NCBI GenBank assembly: GCA_950097015.1
Contig: CATNEN010000037.1
Location: 2,604,001 to 2,668,000 of the forward strand
Source: Macrostomum hystrix
Lineage: Eukaryota; Animalia; Platyhelminthes
DNA: 64,000 nucleotides
Reading direction: 5' to 3'
Shown: piece by piece, positions 1 to 57,300 of the stretch
How positions within the stretch are numbered: the first letter of the stretch is position 1
How the letters are laid out: each line of letters begins with the position of its first letter
The notes under the pieces: model-generated
The model's database searches: none
What the model saw: the letters and a program-made list of their open reading frames with translations, nothing else
What the model was told of the DNA's origin: nothing
Position numbers and translations under genes: made by a program

Positions 1-553
1 GGCCATCTATATGCACGACTTTGTAGTTATATATTCTTCTTTTCATTTGCATTGCCTCAGACGCCACCAGACTTGTTGTGGGAGCTAAGCCAGTGTGCAT
101 ACAACCTCTGCATTCATCTCTGCAGTGCGTGTGTGTGGGGTCTGTTTGTGATTGTTTGCCCACCGCAGCTCCACATATAGTTTGGTCCCAAGCGGCCTGG
201 AGTGCTAGCAGTTGTTATCGTGCACTGGCGGGGCAGTGTGTCAAGCCGGACTTTGAATTTCTCAACGTGCTGCCAGCATTCTCTCTCTCTCTCTGTGTGT
301 GTTTTCAAAGGCCGCTTTCCGTTCTGGTCATGAATTTTTTAATCTCTCTCTCTCTCTCTAACCTGCAAGAAGTTGAATATGTTCAATTCCTTGCCAATAA
401 GGTAAAAGGAAATTAATTATGGCACACAAGAAGTCTGAGCTTACTATTATTACTCACTTCTATTTGAACTGACTACTGGATGGAATGGAACCATAAAGGT
501 CAGTTTTCATCGCATGTCTTACGTCTCCCCTAAATACACTTTTTTACAGTTCC

Positions 554-2089
554 TCATCCCAGCGTCTCTTCATCCCAGCGTCACTTCATCTCAGTATCTC
601 TTCTTCCCAGTGTCTCTTCTTCCCAGTGTCTCTTCATCCCAGTGTATCTTCATCCCAGTGGTGTCTCTTCATCCCAGCGTCACTTTATCCCAGCGTCACT
701 TCATACCAGTGTCTCTTCATCCCAGTGTCTCTTCTTCCCAGTGTCTCTTCTTCCCAGTGTCTCTTCATCCCAGTGTCTCTTCATCCCAGTGTCTCTTCAT
801 CCCAGTGTCTCTTCATCCCAGTGTCTCTTCATCCCAGTGTCTCTTCTTCCCAGCGTCACTTCATCCCAGTGTCTCTTCATCCCAGTGTCTCTTCATCCCA
901 GTGTCTCTTCATCCCAGCGTCACTTCATCTCAGTGTCTCTTCTTCCCAGTGTATCTTCATCCCAGTGGTGTCTCTTCATCCCAGCGTCACTTTATCCCAG
1001 CGTCACTTCATACCAGTGTCTCTTCATCCCAGTGTCTCTTCTTCCCAGTGTCTCTTCTTCCCAGTGTCTCTTCATCCCAGTGTCTCTTCATCCCAGTGTC
1101 TCTTCATCCCAGTGTCTCTTCATCCCAGTGTCTCTTCATCCCAGTGTCTCTTCTTCCCAGCGTCACTTCATCCCAGTGTCTCTTCATCCCAGTGTCTCTT
1201 CATCCCAGTGTCTCTTCTTCCCAGTGTCTCTTCATCCCAGTGTCTCTTCATCCCAGTGTATCTTCATCCCAGTGTCTCTTCATCCCAGCGTCTCTTCATC
1301 CCAGTGTCTCTTCTTCCCAGTGTATCTTCATCCCAGCGTCTCTTCATCCCAGTGTCTCTTCTTTCCAGCGTCACTTCATCCCAGTGTCTCTTCATCCCAG
1401 TGTCTCTTCATCCCAGTGTCTCTTCTTCCCAGTGTCTCTTCATCCCAGTGTCTCTTCTTCCCAGTGTCTCTTCATCCCAGTGTCTCTTCTTCCCAGCGTC
1501 ACTTCATCCCAGTGTCTCTTCATCCCAGTGTCTCTTCATCCCAGTGTCTCTTCATCCCAGTGTCTCTTCTTCCCAGTGTCTCTTCATCCCAGTGTCTCTT
1601 CATCCCAGTGTATCTTCATCCCAGTGTCTCTTCATCCCAGCGTCACTTCATCTCAGTGTCTCTTCATCCCAGTGTCTCTTCATCCCAGTGTCTCTTCTTC
1701 CCAGCGTCACTTCATCCCAGTGTCTCTTCATCCCAGTGTCTCTTCATCCCAGTGTCTCTTCTTCCCAGTGTCTCTTCATCCCAGTCTCTCTTCATCCCAG
1801 TGTCTCTTCATTCTAGTGTCTCTTCATCCCAGTGTCTCTTCATCCCAGTGTCTCTTCATCCCAGTGTCTCTTCTTCCCAGTGTCTCTTCATCCCAGCGTC
1901 ACTTCATCCCAGCGTCACTTCATCCCAGTGTTTCTTCATCCCAGCGTCTCTTCATCCCAGTGTCTCTTCATCCCAGTGTCTCTTCTTCCTAGTGTCTCTT
2001 CATCCCAGTGTCTCTTCATCCCAGTGTCTCTTCATCCCAGTGTCTCTTCATCCCAGTGTCTCTTCATCCCAGTGTCTCTTCATCCCAGT
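554..2089. repeat. 16-bp minisatellite (CCCAGTGTCTCTTCAT)n, ~96 copies, with a ~307-bp higher-order duplication
   Basis: Period-16 array read directly. The rare variant block cccagtggtg...cactttatcccagcgtcacttcataccag occurs at 654 and again at 961. The overlapping ORFs in three frames are repeat artefacts. Confidence 0.97.
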
Positions 2090-2524
2090 TCCAGTGTTAT
2101 AGAAAAGAGGATTTAGATCCCTTGCCTCTGGCTTAAAATGGCTGACCGAAGCTTATTAAAGAAATTGCATCCGTCAAAAAAATGTTTCTGCGAATGGCTG
2201 CTCAAGCAAAAAAAAGTTTGGAGACGCGCAAAAATAAGAAAGTCTAGAAATATACAAAAATGAACTCAGGGAAAAGAAAGCAGTCTCACGTCCAGACAAA
2301 CCAGAGTGAGAACTGTGGCGCTTGGCTGAAAGCGAACCTAGGCGATGCCAGAAAGTTTTGCTTCATTAGCCACGGCTGGGAGATCTGGGAGCCAGATTTA
2401 GGACAGAAATTCAATTAGGATCTGCGACAGCGACCGGAATTTACTAAGAACCCTAAAAATAGTACAGTCTTTGTAACAAAAATTTGAGTTTTAATATCTC
2501 TTATCTCTTATATATTATTATTTT

Positions 2525-4112
2525 CAGTTCTCCTCACCGAATTCACAGTTCTCCTCACTAAATTCCCAGTTCTCCTCACCGAATTCCCAGTTCTCCTCAC
2601 CGAATTCCCAGTTCTCCTCACTAAATTCCCAGTTCTCCTCACCGAATTCCCAGTTCTCCTCACCGAATTCCCAGTTCTCCTCACTGAATTCCCAGTTCTC
2701 CTCACTGAATTCCAAGTTCTCCTTACTGAATTCCCAGTTCTCCTTACTGAATTCCCAGCTCTCCTCACCGAATTCCCAGTTCTCCTCACTAAATTCCCAG
2801 TTCTCCTCACCGAATTCCCAGTTCTCCTCACCGAATTCCCAGTTCTCCTCACTGAATTCCCAGTTCTCCTCACCGAATTCCCAGTTCTCCTCACTGAATT
2901 CCCAGTTCTCCTCACTGAATTCCCAGTTCTCCTCACTGAATTCCCAGTTCTCCTTACTGAATTCCCAGTTCTCCTCACTGAATTCCCAGTTCTCCTCACT
3001 GAATTCCCAGTTCTCCTCACTGAATTCCCTGTTCTCCTCACTGAATTCCCAGTTCTCCTCACTAAATTCCCAGTTCTCCTCACTGAATTCCCAGTTCTCC
3101 TCACTGAATTCCCAGTTCTCCTTACTGAATTCCCAGTTCTCCTCACTGAATTCCCAGTTCTCCTTACTGAATTCCCAGTTCTCCTCACTGAATTCCCAGT
3201 TCTCCTCACTGGATTCCCAGTTCTCCTCACTAAATTGCCAGTTCTCCTCACTGAATTCCCTGTTCTCCTCACTGGATTCCCAGTTCTCCTCATCGAATTC
3301 CCAGTTCTCCTCACTGAATTCCCAGTTCTCCTCACCGAATTCCCAGTTCTCCTCATCGAATTCCCAGTTCTCCTCACTGAATTCCCAGTTCTCCTCACTG
3401 AATTCCCAGTTCTCCTTACTGAATTCCCAGTTCTCCTTACTGAATTCCCAGTTCTCCTCACTGAATTCCCAGTTCTCCTCACTAAATTCCCAGTTCTCCT
3501 CACCGAATTCCCAGTTCTCCTCACCGAATTCCCAGTTCTCCTTACTGAATTCCCAGTTCTCCTTACAGAATTCCCAGTTCTCCTCACTGAATTCCCAGTT
3601 CTCCTCACCGAATTCCCAGTTCTCCTTACTGAATTCCCAGTTCTCCTCACTGAATTCCCAGTTCTCCTCACTAAATTCCCAGTTCTCCTTACTAAATTCC
3701 CAGTTCTCCTCACTAAATTCCCAGTTCTCCTCACCGAATTCCCAGTTCTCCTTACTGAATTCCCAGTTCTCCTTACTGAATTCCCAGTTCTCCTCACTGA
3801 ATTCCCAGTTCTCCTCACTGAATTCCCAGTTCTCCTCACTGAATTCCCAGTTCTCCTCACTAAATTCCCAGTTCTCCTCACTAAATTCCCAGTTCTCCTC
3901 ACCGAATTCCCAGTTCTCCTTACTGAATTCCCAGTTCTCCTCACTAAATTCCCAGTTCTCCTTACTGAATTCCCAGTTCTCCTCACTAAATTCCCAGTTC
4001 TCCTCACTAAATTCCCAGTTCTCCTCACTAAATTCCCAGTTCTCCTTACTGAATTCCCAGTTCTCCTCACTGGATTCCCAGTTCTCCTTACTGAATTCCC
4101 AGTTCTCCTCAC
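2525..4112. repeat. 21-bp minisatellite (GAATTCCCAGTTCTCCTCACT)n, ~75 copies
   Basis: Period-21 array; ORFs on both strands simply mirror the unit. Confidence 0.97.
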
Positions 4113-4787
4113 AAGAACTCGCAGTTCTTTTCACTGAGTATCCCGTTTTTTCAGTTTTGTGATCATCTGTTTATGCCAGTAGATTAATCAGATTTCTAGA
4201 CTGTTGTTTCAGATGCACTAAATGAATTCCCCAATTAATGTGATACTGATTTCTCTTGTTTGAATCGAGGTAGAAAAAGCTTTCCTTCAAAAATGACAGC
4301 CAAAGCTTCCACTTTTTCGCATTCCCCATTGGATCAAAATCCCACTGGGCATCCTTAAAGCAGCACCCTAAACGTCGCAACAAAAGCTGAGGGGATAATA
4401 AGACGGGAAAAAACGTTTCTGTGGGATCCTTAAACCGCCGCAAGGGAGTTGCATTCAGTTCCTACATGAACTGGTGCCAGAATTCAGTTTTAATTGCTGT
4501 ACATTTTCCGCATCAATTATGTCCAAGAAATTCTCCTGACCAATTTTGTTAGACTCTGTGGCAACGGCTAGCACTGGGGGCCATATTGAAAAACTGGAAC
4601 ATTTCTGGCAATGATTGGCAGACAGTTTAAAAGCAGATGCAGCTGCGACAGACCAGCCTTGACCATTTTCCGCCTTTTTCTATCCTTTAAGTTTTGTTAA
4701 CATTATTTCTCCCATTCTTTTGTACAGCTGCTAACTAGAATTGTTGACAACTTTTTAACTCACTAATTTCACTTTCACCATCATTCC

Positions 4788-6838
4788 CTCACTCTCACCA
4801 TCACTTCCTCACTCTCACCATCACTCCCTCACTCTCACCATCACTTCCTCACTCTCACCATCACTCCCTCACTCTCACCATCACTCCCTCACTCTCACCA
4901 TCACTCCCTCACTCTCACCATCACTCCCTCACTCTCACCATCACTCCCTCACTCTCACCATCACTCCCTCACTCTCACCATCACTCCCTCACTCTCACCA
5001 TCACTCCCTCACTCTCACCATCACTCCCTCACTCTCACCATCACTCCCTCACTCTCACCATCACTCCCTCACTCTCACCATCACTCCCTCACTCTCACCA
5101 TCACTCCCTCACTCTCACCATCACTCCCTCACTCTCACCATCACTCCCTCACTCTCACCATCACTCCCTCACTCTCACCATCACTCCCTCACTCTCACCA
5201 TCACTTCCTCACTCTCACCATCACTCCCTCACTCTCACCATCACTCCCTCACTCTCACCATCACTTCCTCACTCTCACCATCACTCCCTCACTCTCACCA
5301 TCACTTCCTCACTCTCACCATCACTCCCTCACTCTCACCATCACTCCCTCACTCTCACCATCACTCCCTCACTCTCACCATCACTCCCTCACTCTCACCA
5401 TCACTCCCTCACTCTCACCATCACTCCCTCACTCTCACCATCACTCCCTCACTCTCACCATCACTTCCTCACTCTCACCATCACTCCCTCACTCTCACCA
5501 TCACTCCCTCACTCTCACCATCACTCCCTCACTCTCACCATCACTCCCTCACTCTCACCATCACTCCCTCACTCTCACCATCACTCCCTCACTCTCACCA
5601 TCACTCCCTCACTCTCACCATCACTCCCTCACTCTCACCATCACTCCCTCACTCTCACCATCACTCCCTCACTCTCACCATCACTTCCTCACTCTCACCA
5701 TCACTCCCTCACTCTCACCATCACTCCCTCACTCTCACCATCACTTCCTCACCCTCACCATCACTCCCTCACTCTCACCATCACTCCCTCACTCTCACCA
5801 TCACTTCCTCACTCTCACCATCACTCCCTCACTCTCACCATCACTTCCTCACTCTCACCATCACTCCCTCACTCTCACCATCACTCCCTCACTCTCACCA
5901 TCACTCCCTCACTCTCACCATCATTCCCTCCCTCTCACCATCACTTCCTCACTCTCACCATCACTCCCTCACTCTCACCATCACTCTCACCATCACTCCC
6001 TCACTCTCACCATCACTCCCTCACTCTCACCATCACTCCCTCACTCTCACCATCACTCTCACCATCACTCCCTCACTCTCACCATCACTCCCTCACTCTC
6101 ACCATCACTCCCTCACTCTCACCATCACTCCCTCACTCTCACCATCACTTCCTCACTCTCACCATCACTCCCTCACTCTCACCATCACTCCCTCACTCTC
6201 ACCATCACTCCCTCACTCTCACCATCACTCCCTCACTCTCACCATCACTCCCTCACTCTCACCATCACTCCCTCACTCTCACCATCACTCCCTCACTCTC
6301 ACCATCACTTCCTCACTCTCACCATCACTCCCTCACTCTCACCATCACTCCCTCACTCTCACCATCACTTCCTCACTCTCACCATCACTCCCTCACTCTC
6401 ACCATCACTCCCTCACTCTCACCATCACTCCCTCACTCTCACCATCACTCCCTCACTCTCACCATCACTCCTCACTCTCACCATCACTCCCTCACTCTCA
6501 CCATCATTCCCTCCCTCTCACCATCACTCCCTCACTCTCACCATCACTCCCTCACTCTCACCATCACTCCCTCACTCTCACCATCACTCCCTCACTCTCA
6601 CCATCACTCCCTCACTCTCACCATCACTCCCTCACTCTCACCATCACTTCCTCACTCTCACCATCACTCCCTCACTCTCACCATCACTCCCTCACTCTCA
6701 CCATCACTTCCTCACTCTCACCATCACTCCCTCACTCTCACCATCACTTCCTCACTCTCACCATCACTCCCTCACTCTCACCATCACTCCCTCACTCTCA
6801 CCATCACTTCCTCGCTCTCACCATCACTTCCTCGCTCT
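4788..6838. repeat. 20-bp minisatellite (ACTCTCACCATCACTCCCTC)n, ~100 copies, G-free on the + strand
   Basis: Period-20 array with C/T variants and occasional partial units. Confidence 0.97.
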
Positions 6839-7889
6839 CTTCTAAGTTCAGTATCCAAAACTCGCATTCAGTCCTGTCCGAGCTAATGTTTTAGCTGGGA
6901 CAGCAGCTTTAATCTTCACAACTCGGCTTCTGCTAGAGTTTTCTCTCCCGGATTAAGACCATATAGCGGGGCCGGAAATCCACTGCCATCAGCGTGGGTC
7001 CCTGGCGCCCTCTCCGTGGGGATATCTCGTGTACTTTAAATTTGCAAAGCTCTCCTCGGCCTTCTCGCTTCTTCTCTGCGACCAGCCAGCCAGCCAGCCT
7101 ACTAGGTTTGTCTTTTGGATAAAGCAAAAAATGTCTGCCTCAGTCCAAACCGGAGCTCCTCCCACTTCTCCCCCTCTTTCTCCTTCTCCGCATACAAATG
7201 CGCCCCCGAATATCCCAGCCCCTTCCGTCCGACTGTTCCTTATCCCAGCCAGAGATCCCCCGTCTAACCGCAGAGAGCCGTGTCCCATTCCATCTGGGGC
7301 AATTCCTGGCGGACTTGCGTAAGACTTATCCACGCCAGTACTGCAAAAAACGCTCCTAAATACGCTCGTAGTTTTTCATCCCTGTTCAGTGCGCAAATGG
7401 ATCAAATGCTGGCCGGCCGTATCGAAACTAAATGGGAAAACGGAAAGACAGGCCGAATGGTTGGTACCGTTTGGCATAGCAGAGTGGCGCTCATTAGAAT
7501 GGTTTTTTGTTAATAACAAACGCCTACATGTATGCGCGATTTTTCTTAGAAATATAACTGATTTCCTACCGTCTTGAAGGCTTTGCTGCAGAGAGTTCGA
7601 ATCTGAAATTCGAAAGGTCGGGAGTTCGAATCTCAGAAAAATAAATACCGAATCCTTCAACTTGAAGCTTAGTAACCAAATGCTTTTGTTTACCCAGCTG
7701 CTAGGATAGAAACCAGTCCACAGACTGAACAGCTGTACACAGCCTATAGAAGCGCCGCAAAATTGCTTCCCAACCCAATGATCCAACACAGTTTGTCCAA
7801 GGCTGCAGTGTCTTAGTACTGTTATTGCTGTTAAAACTCCTGTATGACGCTGCGAACCTGTTAACCCCAACTTCCTGACATCCTCGCAG

Positions 7890-9337
7890 CTTCTCCCAAC
7901 GAGGTAGCCTCAATGGGCCAGAGTGCCAGCAGTGAAATCCGCATCGGCCAAGATCCGGCATTTTCCTCTTCATCAGCCGCCTCATCAGCGTCAAACTCAG
8001 CGCCGTCCGCCTCGTTCGCATCCTCGCCGCCGCCGCGGCCGCCTCCGCAGCTCCGATGGCTGCGGGCCAGTCGAGCCAGCCGGCGCAGCCTGACGGCTGA
8101 GTGGGGCTGGTCGGAGCTCGGCCAGCCGGCCAGCCGTTGCCACCTGCTCTTCCTGCGCAGCGACGCCCCCCAGGCCGGCCAGGTCGGTCGAATGCGTCGC
8201 GTCCCGGTGGACTCGCGTCGTCATGGCTACACCATGGCCGGGCTGGCCGAGGACGCGCCCTACCGGGTCTGTCTGCAGTGCGCCGCAGTCGCCGCCGCCG
8301 AGCTAGTCGAGGCTGGCGGGAATCGAACCAGCGCCAAACCAGTCTCGGCCAATCAGGCCGTGAGCGGCAGGCCTGCTGAGATCATGCACTGCGTGAACGT
8401 CTCCACCAAGCAGGCGCACTTGCCTGCCATCATCGGCAGCTGTTTGGGGGCACTTTGCGCTTTGATTCTCGTCCTGGCTCTGGTGCTGCTGTCCCGCCGG
8501 TCCAAGCAGTATCGCAAGGTGAACGAGCGTCAGTCATCGGCCACCGCCAACAAGAAGGTTGTGGTGCACGAGATCGCCTACGAGACTGAGAATCTGCCAA
8601 GTCCCAAACTGGACTTCGACAGCAACTCCGATGGATACATTTATGACGGCAGCGAAGATCAGCCGGTGTCTTCGGCTAGCGACGACATTTTGACACCTCC
8701 GCCCCTGCCGCCGCCGCCGCCGCCGCTAATGCCAGCTTCGCCAGACGAAACAGAGCGATCGAAATCGGAGATTGCGAAATCGCAGCTGAGAGCAACGGCT
8801 GGGGAGGCCCTGTCGACTGCGCAGCCAGAGCTCGCGTCTTTGCTGTCTGTTAATGACCGACCGAGTCCGGACGCCCCGGTGGCCGACACTGCTGACACGG
8901 ACGCGGATGAGGCTGTCGCACCGCCAACACCACCGCCACCGCCGGCGCCATGTTCGACTGATATGGAAGCCGTTAGCCACACTGACGTCGCTGGAGGTGC
9001 AAGTGCTTCAACACCGGCTTCGGCTTCAACTGACGGTCTTCAGATCATCCAGGTAAATGAGACCGATGAGTACTCCATCGACCTGCGCCTGTGCGACTCC
9101 CTGTCGCGTCAGCAGAGTCTGAAGACGCCATTGTCGGCCACCGCGTCCACCGGCACCTCGGCCTCCGTGACTGTGTCAGCGTCAGCGTCAACATCAGCCG
9201 GAGCTGCCTCTGCAGGGCTGCCAGAAGACTCGGCGGCGACTCCGACCCCGCCAGCCAGCGATCATCACGAAGAGCCGGCTGTGCTGGTTGGTGGGGGGGT
9301 GCCATCTCTCTACACGCAGCTCATTGAAACTCTTTAG
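7890..9337 (+). CDS. Terminal exon of a single-pass membrane protein: FN3-like domain, TM helix, long Pro/Ser/Ala-rich cytoplasmic tail ending in a class I PDZ-binding motif (ETL)
   Basis: Acceptor tcctcgcag|C at 7887-7890 opens the ORF frame. FN3-like pattern (LTAEWGW...YTMAGLAEDAPYRVCLQC), hydrophobic LPAIIGSCLGALCALILVLALVLL followed by basic SRRSK, C-terminus IETL. Upstream exons not identified. Confidence 0.75.
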
Positions 9338-11070: not shown

Positions 11071-12020
11071 CTGAACATCAAGAACTATATAAAGAAGTAC
11101 CTTGATCATTATTGAAGTCTATAAGCAAAATAGGAAATGTTATTTCCCAAGAGATTTCCTAAGAGAAATGTTATTTTCTTAACATATACTTAACATATAA
11201 CAACATTTGCTTGACAACTGTGTTAGGGCTAAATTTCTTTACTTAGAGCTTTCCCGCCAAATCACTACACTGGGTAAACTTTAAAACCCACCAGAGCCAA
11301 ACCCACCAGAGCCAAAATTATTCCATAGCCAAAATATCAGCTCTGGTAAACCTTTCCGACCCACCAATGCTAAAAAATGATGGGCCCTAACTAAATGCTT
11401 GTATTGCATTAGTTGTTAAGAGAAAATGGAGATGATTCTTTGAGAAAAGTAATTCACTAGTTTTGTTATAATCAACTAAAAACACACCAGACCCAAATAA
11501 TTGACGATGCAATATTCTCAGAGACCACCAGATCCATAATCAAGCGTTTTTACTATTTATGCGCAGATTTCTGTGTCCAGCTACAGAAAATTCCCTTGAG
11601 TCACAAAAAGTATTTTTAGCTGTCGCAGTGTTGCTAGGGATTGGTTGATACACAAAGCGTGGCAGTTTAAAAGCTGTAGCGAACAATAAATTTCGAGGGT
11701 AGACTTATACTAAGGAACTAAGGTAATGAAAGTAAGCCCCGTCTCTAATTAGCTAGCCAAATCATGTCTCATGATTTATTTGTCGGCATATCTGCATGTT
11801 GGTCCTTCAGCCCACATTATTTATAAGTAGCTAAGCTTGATTCTAGCTTAATAAGACATTCACTCTCTTTCGCCTTTCCATAAAAGCTGTGCTTCAGCTT
11901 TAGACCTGTTTACTTGTTAATTAACTTATTACATTTTAGGCGCTGAGCAGAGATATTGGCTGGCTTCATTCATTTATTAATGCTTTGTGCAAAAAAGACT
12001 GAAACTATATTTATTTATTA

Positions 12021-13670: not shown

Positions 13671-16310
13671 GAATCACTAGACAAAGAGGAAATACATGAT
13701 TATCATGGTTTTCATGTTGGAAACTAGCTGTGTGATTATAGTCAATTAATCCTGGACAAAAATATCTGGCAAGTTTTGGGAATCACTAGACAAACAGGAA
13801 ATACATGATTATCATGGTTTTCATGTTGGAAACTAGCTGTGTGATTATAGTCAATTAATCCTGGACAAAAATATCTGGCAAGTTTTGGGAATTAATAAAT
13901 AAATATAGTTTCAGTCTTTTTTGCACAAAGCATTAATAAATGAATGAAGCCAGCCAATATCTCTGCTCAGCGCCTAAAATGTAATAAGTTAATTAACAAG
14001 TAAACAGGTCTAAAGCTGAAGCACAGCTTTTATGGAAAGGCGAAAGAGAGTGAATGTCTTATTAAGCTAGAATCAAGCTTAGCTACTTATAAATAATGTG
14101 GGCTGAAGGACCAACATGCAGATATGCCGACAAATAAATCATGAGACATGATTTGGCTAGCTAATTAGAGACGGGGCTTACTTTCATTACCTTAGTTCCT
14201 TAGTATAAGTCTACCCTCGAAATTGATTGTTCGCTACAGCTTTTAAACTGCCACGCTTTGTGTATCAACCAATCCCTAGCAACACTGCGACAGCTAAAAA
14301 TACTTTTTGTGACTCAAGGGAATTTTCTGTAGCTGGACACAGAAATCTGCGCATAAATAGTAAAAACGCTTGATTATGCATCTGGTGGTCCCTGAGAATA
14401 TTGCATCGTCAGTTATTTGGGTCTGGTGTGTTTTTAGTTGATTATAACAAAACTAGTGAATTACTTTTCTCAAAGAATCATCTCCATTTTCTCTTAACAA
14501 CTAATGCAATACAAGCATTTAGTTAGGGCCCATCATTTTTTAGCATTGGTGGGTCGGAAAGGTTTACCAGAGCTGATATTTTGGCTATCGTCAGTTATTT
14601 GGGTCTGGTGTGTTTTTAGTTGATTATAACAAAACTAGTGAATTACTTTTCTCAAAGAATCATCTCCATTTTCTCTTAACAACTAATGCAATACAAGCAT
14701 TTAGTTAGGGCCCATCATTTTTTAGCATTGGTGGGTCGGAAAGGTTTACCAGAGCTGATATTTTGGCTATGGAATAATTTTGGCTCTGGTGGGTTTGGCT
14801 CTGGTGGGTTTTAAAGTTTACCCTACACTGCCCCTCCAGAAACAGCCAGAGGGGCGGGCAACTAATTGAAGACCATAAGTTCGCAAAATAATATACTTTC
14901 GAGGATTTTTGTTTTGAAAAGTTAAGTTCCGTATAATTGTTCTGAATTTGTAGGATGAATATGTTAAGTTGAGTATTTAGCTATTATATTCGCATTTACA
15001 TCATAATTAACAATGCTCTATCCAACAGGAACATACCTCGTATACATAAACGTTCATATACCAAAAACTAAAAAGCCCGCATTTTCAAGCACGGCAATTT
15101 TCGAAAAACTTCAGAAATTAATTGTCCGTCCTCTTGTTAGGCCTATTTCACGGGTTAGAAGTTAGTTGAAACATAAATACTAAAGTATTTTAGTATAAAA
15201 ACGAAATACTTGCCCTGGAACTGAAATGCTTGTTTTAATAGCTCTAGCTAGTTGATAATACTATACTTCTTAGCATACAACTATTTGTGTGAATTAGCTT
15301 TGGTTTGTGGTGTTAGGCAGAAAAATATTTTGTAATAAGAGTATTTTGAATATTTTTGATAATAAATAATATGTTATTAGTTAGTGATACTTGTGATAGT
15401 AATTAAACAACAGTCTGTTATAATTTTTATAGGATAAATACACATGTTCCACTTGCTTGCTAGTTTAATTTTTACAAAAAATTGTCAATGGTGTCTTTGT
15501 GAATTTGTGTTTGTCTTTGAGAGACTTTTTGCCAAACTGGGAGAACTTACAAAATCTAAAGGCAGTAAATGTTTTTCTCATTTCTATCTTTTTAAAATTG
15601 AAAGCTCAGTAAAATAGAAATGTTTTAATAGGCTATTGTAGGGTTTTAATAAAGTTTAATAAAGTTTTAATAAAAAATTCTGTGCCACCCAGAAAAGGAT
15701 GTTCCCAAAGGTGTTGCGCAGGTGTGCGCACTATTGTGCCGTCTGAGCATACTACTAGGCCTATGACATCTGAGTAAGATGCAATTGACTCATAGACACT
15801 GTCAGTCATCTGTTCATTGGTTGTTAGTCACATTGTTTCTTGGTTTGTATACAAAACTCGTTAAATTTTGGGAAATCAGTTCTAGAACTATATAGGGGCC
15901 TACATTAAATTTCAAGAAAAAATGTAAGTAAAACTTAGCAGTAGAATTTATACAAGCATAATTGTGTAAAATAATATTAAACCTTTTGTCCTATTAACTA
16001 GTTTGCTGAGATTATACATATCAGTTTATTGGTATTGCTCTAGCTATTGCTATTTGTCTACTTTTGCTAGCTTGTTGAATGTATTCATTCAGATGTAGAT
16101 TCTACATGATGTAGTAATTATATATAATAATATAATTTTCCATTTCCTTTACTAGATCTATTAAAAATGGAGATTCACGATAAAAGTTCAATGCAAAGTT
16201 TTTTGTTTATCTAGGCATAAATCAATCTTTTTTGGTAGGATTTTATTCCTTATGTTCCTAAATCTAGCAAGCATCATAACATGCCTATTCACTCCAGCTA
16301 TCTCCAAGTC

Positions 16311-34362: not shown

Positions 34363-35234
34363 TTTGTTTGCCTTCTAAAAATTAAAAGTAAGCTAGAATT
34401 ATAATAATTGAGCATAAATTTATACCTGACAAACAAAAAATAACCCTGATAAGTACACATAACAAAGGAATTTTTACGGCATACATGTATACCATCCAGA
34501 GTCTGGTGCTGAAGATACTTAATTTGACAATGGGGAAAGTGGACAGGTATTAAATAGGGAAATTGCTAGACTGTCAGCAAAGGGGGTCTTCTTAAGTTTA
34601 GGAAAATCTTTTTGTGAGGCCAGTTATTAGTTTAAGTTTTCAACATTTGCTAATATGCGGATATTTACTTAACTGGCATAATATCAGTTTGCTATATTAA
34701 TAAAATAATTAGCAAGCTAACAAGGTAAGATTTGCTTTTTAATAAGTAAGGGTAATAATTGATAGTTTGCAAACAGGGGATAAACTACACTATAAGGTTT
34801 CTAATGTTTGCTAATTTGCCAAGTGGTGAAGACAGTAGGATAAGTTTTCTAAAAATGACTTATTTTTAAGCTAACAAGCTTTGAAAAATGGCAAAATTAG
34901 GTTTCTTAATTACAAAGTTTCTAAACTCTTATTACCTGAAAGTTAGACTATGGATAAAAGCAATAGGCCTAGGGAGACTAGGCCTACAATTTCATTAAAA
35001 ACAATTTTGAAAATCATTGATACAAGCTAAAATAAGCATTAAACAAAGTTTGGCGCACAGAATACACCAGAATGCTCAATCAAGCTCCCTGCAAAAAAAA
35101 TTTCAGCAAAAACGATTTGCTAGTCTACGCTACTTCTAAGGTGAAGTGATTTGCCAGTAGTGCTGGCTTTTTTATCAACCTGAGTATATTGAGATCGATT
35201 TTGCCATAGACTATGTTTCTCGCTTGTCTTTCCT

Positions 35235-35447
35235 TCCATCTTAGAAATTGCTGTGTACCAGGAACACGGATTGCTTTCTTCTCCAACTGCTTCTGGTATG
35301 GCTAAGTTCTATGAGCAAGTTGACAAGCTTTTTGACCTTGCCAATAATGTAGCACCATTCAAGGCCATTACAGCTGAGAACCTGCAGGCAAAAAGTCAAG
35401 AAATTGATTATTGGATCGTCTGGCTGAACTCTCTGAGGTTCCAGTAC
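35235..35447 (+). pseudogene. P-element/THAP9-type transposase fragment
   Basis: ASGMAKFYEQVDKLFDLANN...K.ITAENL...WLNSLRF resembles the TA.F....D.LFD..N segment of P-element transposases, and it lies inside P-type TIRs. Confidence 0.65.
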
Positions 35448-35449
35448 AG

Positions 35450-35906
35450 CTCCCAAAGCATTGGCTGGGTACAGGTGGCGCCAGAGAAATTCCTCCAGGT
35501 GGGTTTTGAAGAGTCCAGCCGAGGTTCTGTGCATGGACCTGAACTTTGCCTTTGCATGGGCCCAGGTCCCCTCAATGGTGTTTGTGTGCACTGTACTGTC
35601 CAGTGGGTCAACAAAGTGCAGCCTATGATTGACAACAGCATGGTTTGCCAGGCCAGCGTATGCAAGCCAGCCATCTGTGAGGATGCAGCTGCCAGGTAGG
35701 ACATGCCACTGGATGATTGGCATCAGGGTAGCAGCGGACCGGTCTGCAACAATTACAATCATGCACTTCTTTGTCTGATGCTCGACCATCCCAAAGACCC
35801 AATGGCCCTCTCGCCAGGCCCCCCGGTGGTACTTGCGGTGCATGAACTTTGACTCATCGATCTCTACATCGATACCCGGTCGACCTAGCTGAATTGGATA
35901 ATCCAC
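35450..35906 (-). pseudogene. Merlin/IS1595-family transposase catalytic-domain fragment
   Basis: VEIDESKFMHRKYHRG..WVFGMVE..TDGWLAY..VNH..FVD..HTNTIEGTW..EEFLWR; the D, D and E positions are all present; no N-terminal region. Confidence 0.9.
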
Positions 35907-37726
35907 AAGGTACTATCCTGGTTGAGCTGGTGGCATTATCTGTATGCAGTCAAAAATATTCTTAATCACAAAAAAAGTAGATCATATAGGCAGAAAAAAT
36001 ATGTCCCTCCCTTAATAATAAAAGCTCACTCAGCCACGTCAGCTTTATTCTACGGCACTTGCCACATCATATTAAACATCTCTGTGGACCCGCAAATTCA
36101 AATCCATTTGAAAAATAATATCGTGAAGGAAACCTCAACATTGCCAATCGGGCCTCTCTGTCCATAAAAAGTTCCAACTTGAATAGACATACAAAAGAGT
36201 GACTACTTCTCAAATTTTAGTACTACTTAACTCTTCTTCACCTCAGGAGTAGTGTCAATGGCTTTATATTTCAGCTTTAGATTTGGAAGCTGATTGAGCA
36301 TTCTGGTATATTCTGTGGTTTGGCCATATAAAACAGCTTTGATTTCAGTTACTAAAACCATAAAATACAATCCTTATTTCAGCATCAATTAATAGTTTGT
36401 CAAGAAAAATTGATTTTTATTTAAACATCACTTTTGTGACTTCAGTGCTCTAGCCTAGATACCACTAGGGCCTAGCAAGCTAGAGTTCTATGTACCATAT
36501 TAAAGGCCCTACATACTCTTTCCTCCATCTGCAAAAAAGTTAATAAAACAGTAATGACAGTATTATTAATGACAATAATTCGTAGGAAGAATTACAAACA
36601 TAAATAAGACTAGGCTATAAATAAATAGATTGCCTAATCTATAAAACAGATTATAATAAAGACAAAAAAAACAGAAGAGCTTCAAAGCATTATTTGTTTA
36701 CAAGTAATAAGCCCTCAAGCATCTGCATCTCAAGCCCTAAGGAAGTTACAACTTCCTTAATGATAACCTTGCTGTATACAAGAAAATATATACAGCAGTA
36801 GAGCCCCCACAAGGGCTGACCTGCAGTCCAGATTGGACAAGGCCGTTTAGCAATGATAACCTTGTACAATTGCACTCACTACGTAGTACGTTTAAAAGCA
36901 CGCGATATGCGCGTCAAGAAATTTGCATGCCAGCGAGAAGGGTCTTAAAGTTAAAATTATAAACAGTCTCAAAATGTTAACAAAAAGATAACGCTACTAA
37001 GAAGTCAGATGTAGAGACCTCTTAAAAGTAAAATAAGTACATTAAAATTTTTTTTATTCAATTTGCACTTAGTTATTATTTTTGTAAATTCCATGTCGCA
37101 GACCGAAAACGCTTGCAAAGTTTTTTACTTCAATTTAAAATGACAATATGAACAAGTTATCTTCTTTTTTGTCTCCCTAAGCCTTTTTCGTGCCGCGTTA
37201 TTTTGCTCGCCCCTTCTCCCCATGTGCTCCTATTATTTGCATTTTCTTAGCTGCTAATATAATATCTAGTTTCTTACATCGTTATCTTCGTTTGCTTTTC
37301 GATTTTCGCACTTTTTCAAACTTTCAATTAACTGTTTCGTGAACTCACGAACTCACGACTCGTCGTGTTTTGTGATTTATAATATATTTAAATGTCGTAA
37401 TAAAAATATACACGTTACACTTTATTGGCCAAACAGGCATCTTGCCTGAGCCAACAACTACTACTCGAAGAGATTATTAGTACAATTAATAAAACTAAGT
37501 ATGGGGCATTGAAAGTCTCTACTATTCCCCTAGGTTCATAATCACAACTCATCTTATAACTGTCGCTTAAAAATAACTAGTGGGCCTAAGTCTATTCATT
37601 TTACTCTTAATGATATAACGTCAAATGCGGAATGTTTCAGTTGTGTTTTAGCGAAGTAGTAGATAATTTAATACTAGATTAGCCAATGGCAATCCAGGCA
37701 ATAGCTTTATAGTATTACTATAGCTA

Positions 37727-38387
37727 GGGTAATGTATCATCAACCGAACAGTGTATCTTCAAAACCGAACAAGAATTTTGACTCCTTCCTTGGTCTTGTG
37801 CAAGATAGAAACAAGCTATTGTGTTTCACAGAACAACTAGTTTGAAAGTTGAAGAAATTATCTACAAGCTGAGGCATGATGTGCAATGAAGCATTAAGAG
37901 AAAAGAAAGATATTGATGTTTCAGTAGAAATTTTTATTGCAAAAGCATACTTTTTAACAACATTTTTTCACTTTCACTTTCACTTTCACTTATGTACTTT
38001 AAACAAAGATTGTATGTGGTTGCTTGCCAATTAAATGACCATAAATGTAGTTATTTATAGAGCATGAAAAATGCTTTCAAATTACATAATTCATGATAGT
38101 TCACTCCTTAAAATAAGATTAAACCACTCACTCAAATTGTACAACCAAACATCAAATTCTCTGTTTGGTTTGAAGATACATGAAAATCATTGTTCGGTTT
38201 TAGATAAAAAGCAGGAATAACTTTTTTCTATTTGACAAAATAGCAAAAGCAGATACTTTTTAGAAAGATGTAACTGTTTTCTATAACTTGGCTTTTAATT
38301 TATCATCATATCTTAAACAGAAAGTCTGTACCTTAGGTTTGAAGTAAAAAAAATACACATTCTTGTTTGGTTGATGATACATTACCC
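37727..38387. mobile_element. MITE copy 1, TA|GGGTAATGTATCATCAAC ... GTTGATGATACATTACCC|TA
   Basis: Near-perfect TIRs of about 25 bp, TA on both flanks, non-coding interior. Confidence 0.88.
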
Positions 38388-38513
38388 TACGCCCCTTCAA
38401 TTCTATAAAATATGAAGCCTAGCTGGCATATTAACACCATCCATACCTGCAGCCTTTTTTATAAAAATACTCTAGGCCTAGCCACCTATGGCACTATTTT
38501 CTGTTTGTGAGGA

Positions 38514-39154
38514 GGGTAGGGGGGGCCTAATGTATCATCAACTGAACAGTGTATCTTCAAAACCGAAAAATAATTTTGACTCCTACCTTGGTCCTATGCA
38601 AGACAGAAACAAGCTAGGCCTATTGTGTTTCACAGAACAACTAATTTGAAAGTTGAAGAAATTAGGCCCTATCTACAAGCTGAGGCATGATGTGCAATGA
38701 AGCATTAAGAGGAAAGAAAGATATTGATGTTTCAGTAGAATTTTTTATTGCAAAAGCATAGGCCTACCTTTTGACAACATTTTTTCAGTATGTACTTTAG
38801 ACAAAGATTGTATGTGGTTGCTTGCCAATTAAATGACCATTAAAGCAGTTATTTATAGAGCACAAAAATGCTTTCAAATGACATAATTCATGATAGTTCA
38901 CTCCTTAAAATAAGATTAAACCACTCACTCAAATTGTAAAACCAAACATCAAATTCTCCATTTGGTTTTAGATGAAAAGCAGGAATAACTTTTTTTCTAT
39001 TTGACAAAATAGCAAAAGCAGATACTTTTTAGAAAGATGTAACTGTTTTCTATAACTTGGCTTTTGATTTATCATCATATCTTAAATAGAAAAACTAAAG
39101 CTTAGGTTTGAAGTTAAAAATACACATTCTTGTTTAGTTGATGATACATTATCC
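38514..39154. mobile_element. MITE copy 2 (same family, same orientation) with four G(n)C(m)TA micro-insertions
   Basis: Collinear with 37727-38387; extra bases at 38519-38529, 38617-38622, 38665-38671 and 38761-38766. Confidence 0.88.
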
Positions 39155-39439
39155 TAATATAAGAGTCATGAAATTTGAGTCATGAAACGCTGGAATGAAA
39201 TTTGATTCCCTAGCTCCTGTACGCCAATGTACGCCAGCAGATTTATAGAGTCAAATATGTTTAAGCCTTTTTTAATTTTTGTTTCATTTCTGCTGTCGAC
39301 AAAGACAATTGACCTTTAAGTTGACACTTGTACCCTGTGTCTGGCGGTACCTGGACACTTCGTCATCTTACACATACATGCGCAACCTCCCAAATCTTAG
39401 CCGGCCCTGCGACTTAATTTTTGCTCTCATTTGCGACTT

Positions 39440-40800
39440 AGTTTGTTTCATTGCTCTATTTACGACTTAGTTTGCTCTCATTTGCTCTCTTTTTCTCTCC
39501 CCTTTTTCCTTTTCTTCACGCCTTTCTTTTTTGTCCCTTGGTCCCCCTTAGAATTTTTTGTGCTTGGTTGATTGGTTTTTGCGACTTACCTTGCTTGGTC
39601 CTCGTTTCACCCAGCCGGGTTGGCCAGGTGTTGTGCATGTATGATCTTACAACTTTGTCATCCTGATGACGATCTGTCAAATATCTCAGAGGGTGGATGA
39701 CGAAGAGACTTAGACTTGTGGACACTTCATCTATAAAACAAAAGTTTTTCAAGTTAGAACAGAACCACCCCTTCCCACCTCATCATATCGTGTTGGCACC
39801 TATCTTTCAACTCTTATAATGAAATCAGTTTTGACATCTCTTTTTGACAATTTAGAGTGTGAAGTGTGTTTACACCTCTGCCTATCACCCCACCTTCACT
39901 TTATTGATGACGAACTTGATTGCTTGTTATTAGTAGATGAGGAACTGACCAAACTTTAAAGCATGCCAATTGGCTAGATAATGAAGTGTCCTACCTTCCA
40001 AGTGGATGACGAAGTGTCTAGGATCCTATATGGCTACCTTGTAGTTGTAGCTATATTATAACAGAAAATAACAGAAATCAAGAAAATGTACTAGGCCTAG
40101 AATGCTTAGTCTCAATGAATGCTGACAAGTAAGAACCTAATTTGATTTGTTTAAATATTTAGTACTTACTAGTTAGTCCCTAAATTATGGTCATAGATAT
40201 ATAATGAAATTATTCCTAGCTTATTTTACTAAACTTAGGTCCAGCTAACTAGAAAATTTTATTTTTATTTTTTTGAAAATTTCTTAATTCAATTGCATTT
40301 GCAGCAAATGCAATTCTGTCTTCTGATGCCCTGTTTAAGAACCATCTCAGTGAATCTATGACTATGACTGTTGCCATGGAATACATTTGGCAGCTTCCTA
40401 TATTGGCTACAGTACTACTAATTGACTCTAGCTAATAACCTTTTTTATGTCTTGAAATTTATGAAATCTAAAATTAATGTAATTCCACATACTAGGAGAT
40501 TGCCTACATTATATTGTAGTGTTGCCACAGTTATATGCTAAATAAATTTGCTGAAATCACTAGCTGAAATTTGCTAAAAAATCACTGAGCTAGCTCATAC
40601 ATGCACAATGCCTGGCCAAATTTGCTGGATGAAATGAGGGCCAAGCAAAGAAAGTTGCAAAAATCAATTGACCAAAGGCAAAAAATCAAAGGGGAGAGTA
40701 AGTTACAAAGAGAGAAAGAAGAAAGTGCAAGGAAGAGAGAAAAGAATGAGAGAGGAAGAGAAAAAGAACAGAGAAAAAAAAGATATGAAAAATGATTAGT
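39440..40800. repeat. Diverged inverted pair (~39440-39650 versus ~40590-40800), probable transposon relics
   Basis: CATACATGCACAA(C/T)(A/G)CCTGGCCAA...GGGCCAAGCAA.. and the following purine-rich tract occur in opposite orientations. Confidence 0.6.
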
Positions 40801-54393: not shown

Positions 54394-57300
54394 ATTAAAT
54401 ATGAAACTTATTTGAGCTGAACATGAAACTCTTACCAAACAGGTATGCTATCCACACCAGACATCAGGCGGACCTTTTGCTGAAAAATTCCATCTGTGCA
54501 GGACTCGCCAACCAGTTTGAATGGATGATTTTCTCCGTCTAGGGTAACTACCGCGCCTAGAATATTGGTTTCGACACACTCTCCCAATAGGCTTCCTGAG
54601 GACCGCTGGACAGTCACAATAACACTTTCAGAAGGCGACTCGCCAGGCAAACAAAGCTGCTGGGTTGACCGAGTTCTAGAATTGCCTAATGGACATTCTG
54701 CAGCTGGTTGCACTTTGATTCGCACTTGCATTTCAAGACAGAAGCTGAAGGTTGAAATTATTATAGGCCCTAGTGAAATATTTGGAAGTAATTATATAAC
54801 GAATCAAAGGTTGGAAAATATATAATATCTAAAACCTTAGAAAAGAAAATACAAGTAAAAAATGTCAATTATCAAATAATATTAACAATGTCTTTAAATA
54901 TTGTTATGAGAGGCTAGCCACTGTTATAAGATAATTAAGGTAGTAATAATTATGGATTAGACTCAGGGGGAGTGGAGCCACTTTTGTTTAGGGAGGGGGA
55001 ATGCATTGTCAGTTAGGATCCCAATTCCAATTAGAAGTTAAATATTTAGCTGGTAACCAGACTTCTGAACTTCAGACTTTAGAAAAATAAGTTAAAAGTT
55101 TTAATCTCTGCCTAAGGAAGACAATTTCTATCCTTGAGGTGTAAATTCACCCAGTTGTAAATTGGGATCAGACTAAGCTAAGATATAACTTTGGGCGAGT
55201 GTGTTAGTAGTACTAAAAGTGTAGTTACTTTGTAGTAGCCTTCACAAGACTACTGGCGTAGATAGATCTCTAATTTTATAATCATAAATATTTCAAATAT
55301 TTTACAAATATAACAAAGACTAGCTGAATTAGGTTATATTAAGGTACATAGATATTATCAATTGATCAAAACATAGGCCCTAGTAGACTGTACATGTGTT
55401 CCGATAAATTATGTTTTGATATCACTTAGCTAATGTATATTGAATAGGGCCTTAAAATTAGAAAGACCATGAAGAGGTTTATTCAAATACCAACACTTTT
55501 CTTTTTTGCTAGGCCTATAAAATTGCTATAAAAACCAAGAACATTCAGAGCTAAAATACTGTGTTCTGTCCAATGAACCAACTTACAAATTATAAAATAT
55601 TGCCAAGAAAAAAAATTTTTGGGTGTGCGCCATAGTTAGGATCATGTAGTATGTAAGTATATGCCCAAAAATTCAGGTGTGCATTGGTGTTGCCTTGCCT
55701 ACAGGCCTATTTTGGCCAGCAGACATGGTTGGCATGCACTTGTTGCAAATTAAACTCTTGGATGCACACTTAGTGCTCAAGGTTAGTAAAATGTACATAT
55801 AACACGCATGACTAATAGTAAAAAGCAAGAAGTGATGTTGACAAGAGAAAATTGACTATGTCCAGGCTATGGGGTGTCTGCTAGCAAAGACCACCAATAT
55901 TAGATATAATTTTCCTGCTCACAAAATTTCATAATATAACCATGTTGGCTATTAGGCCTAGCATTGATCATAGTACATTGATACTACTGCACATTTTCAG
56001 CCTAGGCTACAATTTCCACTGAATGACTCAATCCTAGCTTGTTTTAAAAATTCTGAACTTAAATGGGTTTGATTTTGAAGTGTTTCTCTGAAACTTTTTT
56101 CTGGCCTTACATCTGCTCAAGATGTCCGTAGCGTAAAATTTGGCGTTATAACTTTAAGAAACAGTAGCCAGTATGGCTTAAGCCAGTATGAAAATATATT
56201 CATAAAACTCGCCCTTCGACTGATACTTTTAAGTCCTCGCCGTCAGTGCTAGGTCACTGACGGTGGTCAGTCAGTGATCCAGACTCATCGATTAATAGAA
56301 AAGTGTTTAAATTTGTGCGAAACACGTTTCTCGAAAATAAGCTCACGAAGAAACACAGTTAGGGGAAAATTTTAGAAGTTGAATTTCTTATAGAAAACAG
56401 AGACAAAATATGTATGTTAAATATACATAGATATGTCGATAAACTAATGCGTAGTTATAGTTCATGCAAAACTATACTAAGGTATAAACTAGGTATAAAC
56501 TAAGGTATAATTTATCGAGTTTTATTAAGTAGCATACACAATCGTTAACATGGCTTAATACGAGTATTGTATATAAAAATTCAGCCATCAACTTGTACTT
56601 AACTCCTAGCATTATATTTTTACAAATCCGCCCGAGATAAAATATATGCTGTTGGGAGATATCTAATATAGATCAAGGACTCCGTTAAACTACAATTGTA
56701 TATTCTTCCTATTGTTGTCGGAAACTCTTAGGCCCCTAATAATAGAGCGGTTTCGATCACTGAACAGCTGTCGGGGCATGTTGGTCGGTGTTAATTGGAC
56801 AGTAAAAAATCCGCTTATGATCGGTCAATCAGATCATCCGTATTTACTCCATTCTAGAGTCCCACATTCACATGAAGTTGCGTACACTCAGCTAATTATT
56901 GAGATAAATTTCTAGACCATTGGTGTTATTATTGCATGATGCAACCTTCTGAGTTTTTTATTTTCAGAAATGGGTAGCAAATGCCTAGCGTAATTGAATT
57001 CGCTTTCTTGCCATTACTCATGATTTTTAGAGATTTCGATCATTTCCTTGAGTAATTAAGATTTGGTGCTTTGTGGGTATAAAATGTGAATCCTAAAAAT
57101 TCAATAAGAATGATTGCTTAGCTTTTTTAATTAGTATATGGTCCCAATCAATATTTTATGTTGTTTATTTACGCGCCAGCAGGCAATAAATGCGCGTACA
57201 AATACTGCCCATCTACTTGAAGTAGTATGGTTAGAAAAATTTTTATGCCCGTACCGTTGTGATTGTCTCATAAACTCTAGATTCGATCACAATTGACCTC

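Follow-up and report, generated by a model that had tools for sequence, protein, structure and literature searches.

What writes short blocks of G and C into single TA dinucleotides of a flatworm genome? The question is raised by a stretch of 64,000 nucleotides of Macrostomum hystrix (contig CATNEN010000037.1, positions 2604001-2668000, from an assembly of 220 Mb in 42 contigs), here called the window, in which two neighbouring copies of a 647-bp miniature inverted-repeat transposable element (MITE) differ by motifs of the form TA-G(n)C(m)-TA. A sequence-only reading of this DNA had taken these motifs for excision scars of a TA-targeting transposon family with GG..CC ends, and we keep the word scar for them. 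We analysed them in the window, in sampled loci and across the genome, where the first 100 places of each motif or k-mer listing were viewed. The best explanation, to which we give a probability of roughly 0.75, is that TA-G(n)C(m)-TA represents the excision footprint of IS630/Tc1/mariner elements with GG...CC ends, made by a 2+2 fill-in. That the motifs are excision scars of one kind or another is very likely.

The shortest form, the eight-letter palindrome TAGGCCTA, occurs exactly ten times in the window, where the sequence-only reading had counted at least ten. Dinucleotide-preserving shuffles held 0.70 copies on average (largest 4; none of 100 shuffles reached 10). A regular-expression scan for TA-G(2-7)-C(2-4)-TA found seven longer forms, among them every length variant that had been listed before, and in the same scan the CpG mirror form TAC+G+TA showed no comparable excess in the window. 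The enrichment extends to the whole genome, as the sequence-only reading had anticipated, with 11,338 copies of TAGGCCTA versus 1,968 of the reversed word. The palindrome makes up 19.5% of all WWGGCCWW words, which is ~3.6x the mean of the other 15 flank combinations. A tandem satellite on contig C1, in which ATGGCCAA repeats every ~219 bp or multiples thereof (C1:127752-135425), inflates the WWGGCCWW control count. In a 173 kb non-repeat sample, TAGGCCTA reached ~30x the second-order Markov expectation and was the sole strong outlier among all TA-NNNN-TA octamers.

The two MITE copies allow the direction of the change to be determined. Alignment of copy 2 (38514..39156, plus strand) with copy 1 (37725..38389, plus strand, including the two TA duplications) agreed with the four insertions at TA described earlier. 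Three of them, +GGCCTA (scar at 38615..38622), +GGCCCTA (TA-G2C3-TA at 38663..38671) and +GGCCTA (38759..38766), lie at single TAs; the fourth, +G7CCTA, lies at a TA 3 bp within the left terminal repeat of copy 2 (TA-G7C2-TA at 38517..38529). Raised together with the sequence-only reading was the possibility that the motifs belong to the family consensus and were lost from copy 1. They do not: the consensus of 32 MITE copies has a plain TA at 38617, 38665 and 38761, and copy 1 likewise has a single TA at all three; the same is true of the TA in the terminal repeat at 38517. Since the consensus holds a single TA at each site, the motifs of copy 2 are derived insertions, and removal of G(n)C(m)TA gives back the consensus sequence. 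The single-TA empty sites that the earlier reading had called for were thus seen, at paralogous positions. A fifth independent GGCC insertion was found in MITE copy L005, at another TA that is again single in the consensus. Among the nine minority insertions of at least 3 bp in the 32-copy alignment, four consist of G(n)C(m)TA placed at a TA and five are tandem duplications.

Outside the MITE the motif behaves in the same way. All 17 motifs of the window and all 164 sampled ones read TA-G(n)C(m)-TA, that is, the TA is duplicated on both sides. The flanks were mutually unrelated for all 164 sampled scars, including 106 motifs of 29 MITE-bearing loci, and the motif is therefore not part of a repeat consensus. 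Chains in which scars share a TA, for example TAGGCCTAGGCCTA, are about as frequent as they should be if the TAs of a scar are hit again at the local rate. One-mismatch derivatives are in excess by ~15 per 58 exact motifs, which as a rough estimate suggests a mean scar divergence of ~3%.

The variant spectrum was analysed in a sample of 306 kb that is biased towards MITE loci. In this sample, 118 motifs had no base between TAGG and CCTA, 29 had one G or C and one had a single A or T; a single extra inner base was thus G or C in 29 of 30 cases. GG or CC stood between the two halves in 13 motifs, other dinucleotides in three, CCC in three and GGGGG in one. Shorter forms showed no enrichment (TAGGCTA, 9 versus 6.45 expected; TAGCTA, 23 versus 15.5), and neither did the footprints of overlapped GGG/GG overhangs (TAGGGTA, TAGGTA, TAGGGTTA) nor the full 3+3 and 4+4 sums. 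Genome-wide, TAGGSSCCTA matched 1,133 sites, and 46 of the first 50 listed were of the (2,4) or (4,2) form in numbers of G and C, which corresponds to ~1,030 such forms. The symmetric (3,3) form TAGGGCCCTA was found at 35 sites only, below the reversed control of 232, while ~170 would be expected if both sides were extended independently, either by a third G kept from a GGG end or by later slippage. This scarcity implies that the core is fixed at GG+CC and that extra bases join one side only, as the scar forms. The length variants are therefore not additional terminal bases retained from a GGG end, as the sequence-only reading had assumed, although its core, excision scars of elements with GG..CC ends, stands. 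One-sided extension points to slippage in repair synthesis.

A short series of steps would account for these observations. The transposase would cleave the 3' strand precisely where the element ends and the 5' strand 2 nt within it, so that each flank would be left with ...TAGG-3'. Two GG overhangs could not pair with each other; end-joining would copy one of them across the break, add CC and ligate, and the product would be TA-GG-CC-TA, a net 6-bp insertion. Slippage during a single templated synthesis would add a C on one strand (a G on the other) and would yield the one-sided G2C3, G2C4 and G7C2 forms. Scars would build up because the elements mostly move rather than multiply. We infer the presence of an element at each scar, the 2-nt stagger and the fill-in step alike. 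As candidate sources we propose the 647-bp MITE and at least three other TA|GG families, among them one with an intact IS630/Tc1-type transposase.

Several parts of this scheme are known from related elements. In Tc1/mariner transposition the 3' strand is cut precisely at the element end and the 5' strand 2-3 nt within the element (PMC2170065); after non-homologous end joining (NHEJ), 2-4 nt from the start or the end of the element remain between two TAs (PMC6943129). For ISY100 of the IS630 family, the 5' cut lies 2 nt inside, and religation of the donor gave the junction that had been predicted (PMC2170065). The ISY100 overhangs of 2 nt are self-complementary (junction TATATA), whereas the GG overhangs of the flatworm are not, and the flatworm stagger is a prediction. 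Like the footprints of Sleeping Beauty (TACAGTA/TACTGTA), Mos1 (3-nt) and Minos (6-bp), the flatworm scars consist of a duplicated TA with terminal element bases in between. Arca et al. (1997) are said to have described a net 6-bp insertion of the Minos type, equal to that of the flatworm scar. The differences from the canonical footprints are threefold: the inner tetranucleotide is best interpreted as GG+CC, with 2 nt per end joined via fill-in, the variants are one-sided homopolymer extensions, and the scale is of its own. We put the genome total of recognisable scars at roughly 15,000, with a genome mean of ~51 scars per Mb, and in AT-rich intergenic DNA ~1% of TA sites carry a scar. In the literature we found no report of the motif, of genome-wide footprint accumulation in Macrostomum or of such a scale.

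Elements with suitable ends reside in the genome. Four TA-flanked GG...CC families were present in the sample: the MITE (GGG...CCC), L043:1039-2575 (GGAT...ATCC), and L003:825-2617 and L033:1667-3838 (both TA|GGG). Given the 2+2 reading, the inner scar bases GG+CC match the ends of these four resident TA-duplicating families. The L043 element starts with TA|GGATCGC, has 28-bp terminal repeats and comprises an intact open reading frame (ORF) of 382 aa, which matched DDE_3 (Pfam) with 78.8 bits and the IS630-family model of NCBIfam with 108.6 bits (cut-off 100), besides a weak match to the Sleeping Beauty catalytic domain. Judged by these features, the element appears autonomous in form. By passing both the IS630-family model and Pfam DDE_3, its ORF resembles the transposases of IS630/ISY100 and Tc1/Tc3, which make the 5' cut 2 nt inside. 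Candidate matches in the genome number at least 763 for DDE_3 and at least 344 for mariner, many of them with open frames. Identical transposase matches, in inverted order and with different spacing, were seen at C10:83-116 kb and C41:549-589 kb, which may represent a haplotig or a segmental duplication.

The MITE itself has terminal inverted repeats of ~26 bp, measures 644-649 bp per copy and contains no ORF. We estimate its copy number at ~390, as the terminal-repeat 20-mer matched 396 + 383 places genome-wide; a genome search gave 491 candidates. The ends TA|GGG...CCC|TA given by the sequence-only reading were found in all 31 intact sampled copies, which read TA|GGGTAATGTATCATCAAC...CCC|TA, begin with GGG and end with CCC; the duplication was never longer than TA. 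TA duplication, terminal repeats, small size, lack of coding capacity and multiple copies are the characters of a Tc1/mariner-derived MITE. Plant Stowaway ends are of the CTCCCTCC type. With Stowaway-type MITEs, which are non-autonomous Tc1/mariner elements with TA duplications, the flatworm MITE shares the lack of an ORF, the terminal inverted repeats, the TA flanks and the copy number, but its ends are GGGTAATG... and we found no autonomous element whose terminal repeats match: at the listed places, every 20-mer match examined was the MITE. Copy 1 of the window has the ends TA|GGGTAATGTATCATCAAC...CCC|TA, differs from the consensus by 1.9% and carries no scar. Relative to the consensus, a 19-bp CTTTCA-repeat expansion at window positions ~37990-38010 is unique to this copy. 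Copy 2, with its four scars, is the older of the two and differs from the consensus by 4.1% (versus a mean of 1.5% for the other copies); its ends are degenerate, with GA in place of TA at the left flank and CATTATCC as the right end.

Candidates for an autonomous partner of the MITE were rejected. Two longer elements (1.9 and 2.3 kb) with perfect MITE terminal repeats turned out to be MITE copies with unrelated nested insertions, which lack a transposase ORF and show an 8-bp duplication in one case and a 4-bp CTCT duplication in the other. A 1.68-kb element nested in a MITE copy at L032:1334-3013 has the ends GGGTAATTCCATGAGA.../...AATTAGCC; it begins with the same seven bases as the MITE, but its apparent duplication, the 4-bp CTCT, is unlike that of the MITE. 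A 34-mer that shares the first 12 bases of the MITE (TAGGGTAATGTA), is single-ended and lies away from the listed transposase matches. It was seen in 14 identical copies (C1:868623, C1:10717913 and 12 others) with no inverted partner nearby, and probably marks a single terminus of an element that is very young, unrelated or asymmetric.

Scars and MITE copies are found close together. Per Mb, the 29 MITE loci had 1,002 scars, the 15 Tc1 loci 176 and the 15 mariner loci none. Up to 750 bp from a MITE copy the density was ~1,650-2,000 per Mb, at 750-1,500 bp it was ~500-600 per Mb, and around MITE copies it exceeded the genome mean 15-20x. Of the first 100 scars on contig C1 in genome order, 13 lay no more than 1.5 kb from one of four MITE loci, which make up 0.84% of that DNA. 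Both features, however, also follow base composition. When 500-bp bins were stratified by G+C (GC) content, those below 36% GC held 11.4 scars per 1000 TA near a MITE (within 1 kb) versus 8.8 with no MITE within 2 kb, and those of 36-42% GC held 25 versus 1.5. Bins with at least 42% GC far from any MITE contained no scar in 104 kb. The suggestion that scars mark local MITE hopping was downgraded after this stratification, and the link between MITE and scars is largely a common preference for AT-rich intergenic DNA. This compartment, common to both, is not occupied by Tc1/mariner copies. Of the proposal that the MITE is the source, the match of the ends stands and the density excess is mostly GC-driven; the MITE is a candidate source of the scars, not a proven one.

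Scars also occur within MITE copies. Their interiors had first appeared protected (1 scar in 18.8 kb of interior versus ~1,900 per Mb beside copies). We rejected this notion as largely an ascertainment bias, because the 30 loci were the best BLAST matches, a choice that selects against indels. An unbiased terminal-repeat listing revealed 4-6 scars at TAs inside ~92 MITE ends, some of which may be shared by descent, and the spacing of paired terminal repeats suggests an extra 6-8 bp in 4-5 of 32 copies. At L034:4368-4381 and L017:2151-2158 the right-hand TA of the MITE is common to a scar (...CCC-TA-GGCC-TA, doubled in L034), at about the rate expected from the local scar density. Target-site logos of scars and of MITE insertions both showed weak G enrichment at -2/-3 and T depletion at -1/-2, which is not decisive with 31 MITE sites.

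The shared compositional preference weighs against our explanation, as do several further points. The usual Tc1/mariner footprint consists of the bases of one end, from overlapped overhangs, and not of the sum of both, and a 4-nt footprint could equally indicate an unseen element whose termini are GGCC. We saw no site at which one allele or paralogue carries an element and another carries a scar; only the empty and the scar state were observed, among paralogous MITE copies. No transposase was found linked to the MITE terminal repeats. At the best 15 DDE_3 and the best 15 mariner loci, element ends start with GC, TA or TT (Tc1-type) or with CGAGGG (mariner), and only L043 starts with GG; the L043 family has only ~5 copies, with terminal repeats unlike those of the MITE. 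The run of seven Gs in the longest variant is long for a slippage product.

A second type of scar bears on how the inner bases are to be read. The words TACGAGTA/TACTCGTA occur seven times in the window (20308, 22605, 22807, 56559, 61662, 62657 and 62756) versus 0.91 expected, and 16,450 times in the genome versus 8,051 for the reversed control. TACGAGTA consists of TA, the first four bases of an abundant resident mariner family (ends TA|CGAGGGTTG) and TA. MITE loci contained 106 GGCC and 3 CGAG scars, mariner loci 0 GGCC and 6 CGAG scars. CGAG scars are dispersed and lie in GC-richer DNA; GGCC scars are tightly clustered. The sorting of both scar types with their own elements supports the general logic that a scar mirrors the ends of its element. 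At the same time, a CGAG scar holds the bases of one end and not the 2+2 sum TACGCGTA, which was found once in the 306 kb sample. Since CGAG carries a single end's worth of bases, the GGCC scars may likewise come from an unseen element, one with GGCC ends and 4-nt cohesive overhangs.

We consider this alternative unlikely, even though it survives better than the others. It holds that an unseen TA-flanked element with palindromic GGCC termini is cut 4 nt inside, as in Minos, that the overhangs anneal and are ligated, and that the MITE only shares its AT-rich zones. TA-CGAG-TA, with four bases from a single end, speaks for such a course, and so does the uniformity of ~72% of the scars, which would suit simple ligation; that the MITE association is mostly due to base composition fits as well. 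No recurrent TA|GGCC-ended family was present in the 306 kb of scar-rich sequence, which is weak evidence given the small, MITE-biased sample. The variant spectrum is harder to reconcile: cohesive ends need no synthesis, yet ~28% of the scars carry extra G/C, one-sided and never shortened, and GGCC overhangs have no alternative pairing register.

A process without any element is improbable. Here, breaks at TA in accessible AT-rich DNA would be mended with GGCC and a duplication of the TA, for example by a domesticated transposase or a TA-specific nuclease. An element has never been seen at the scar sites, scars outnumber MITE copies by ~40 : 1, and the cluster L035, with 11 scars in 2.7 kb, contains no TA-flanked terminal-repeat element. 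We know of no break-repair pathway that writes a fixed GGCC, however, and template-independent addition would mix bases, as opposed to the 29 of 30 single extras that are G/C. Furthermore, transposition is recognised by just this combination, a duplicated TA and bases that agree with the ends of resident TA elements (PMC6943129), and the second scar type likewise matches a second resident family. Least credible of all is a selected element, such as a protein-binding palindrome of promoters, or an artefact of composition or assembly: perfectly palindromic, with AGGCCT inside, the motif is concentrated in intergenic DNA upstream of genes, but it arises as a 6-bp TA insertion within a junk MITE copy, forms TA-sharing chains such as TAGGCCTAGGCCTA and decays by point mutation (~15 excess one-mismatch forms per 58 exact), and dinucleotide shuffles and the Markov model exclude a compositional cause.

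Excision footprints are textbook knowledge at single loci and are rarely visible genome-wide, whereas in this 220-Mb genome a single footprint stands out as the most over-represented TA-N4-TA word. Read as excision footprints of elements with GG...CC ends, the scars would tally past cut-and-paste events (~40 per extant MITE copy) and map landing sites. They would also provide end-joining junctions by the thousands from the heritable cells of a regenerating flatworm, with an additions-only, one-sided spectrum that constrains the repair polymerase step. In annotation, the motif should not be taken for a regulatory palindrome. More tentatively, the genome might be a near-saturating, base-resolution fossil record of germline/neoblast transposition, written in two scar alphabets, each of which would report where a different transposase prefers to land and by what chemistry its ends are joined. 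It belongs to the same picture, which we regard as possible but doubtful, that GGCC scars would be clustered in AT-rich promoter-proximal DNA and CGAG scars dispersed, and that one-sided extensions would read out polymerase slippage in vivo at non-complementary ends. If true, scar maps would be a sequence-only proxy for chromatin accessibility in heritable cells, and the scars a natural dataset of more than 10,000 NHEJ junctions. What this analysis adds is the polarisation against a family consensus, candidate elements identified by name, the rule that variants are one-sided, a test stratified by GC and a second class of scar.

Within the window, all 17 scars fall into three zones at 15.1-15.9, 34.9-40.1 and 54.7-56.7 kb, with a zone GC of ~34-43%, and the bins of at least 42% GC (38 kb) contain zero scars. 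The three AT-rich zones of the sequence-only reading were thus recovered; their proposed placement near gene 5' ends, compared with the positions of single ORFs and exons, agrees with these. Exact TAGGCCTA copies rest on the motif scan and the shuffles, length variants on the motif scan, and no strand is assigned to either. The first zone comprises TAGGCCTA at 15138..15145 and 15756..15763 and TA-G4C2-TA at 15893..15902, and 0.4-1.1 kb downstream of its scars follows a plus-strand NDUFV3-like ORF, for which an exact-protein look-up in other assemblies gave no match. The second zone belongs to an interval of 34.4-41.9 kb that is flanked by a minus-strand ORF (ATG 34362) and a plus-strand G-alpha exon (start 41930). 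Here TAGGCCTA is found at 34964..34971, ~600 bp upstream of the minus-strand ORF, at 34979..34986, at 38473..38480 in the 123-bp spacer that separates MITE copies 1 and 2, and at 40092..40099, 1.8 kb upstream of the G-alpha start; TA-G3C2-TA lies at 36466..36474, and the four scars of MITE copy 2 complete this group. The third zone, upstream of a plus-strand glycosyltransferase exon, contains TA-G2C3-TA at 54764..54772 and 55374..55382, TAGGCCTA at 55510..55517 and 55953..55960, and TA-G2C4-TA at 56729..56738.

Three further features of the window were observed. Inverted-repeat matches at 11635/14278 and 11937/13976 were rejected as element ends, as they are part of a 3.5-kb foldback. Positions 1-8000 display a very pronounced strand asymmetry (GC skew between -0.39 and -0.74) and, at 514-4137, long ORFs that overlap in several frames, and resemble low-complexity C-rich sequence. 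Within the scar-rich intergenic zone, a minus-strand ORF of 221 aa (35241-35906) contains a transposase domain of the ISXO2/IS1595 type (Merlin-like; E = 4e-18).

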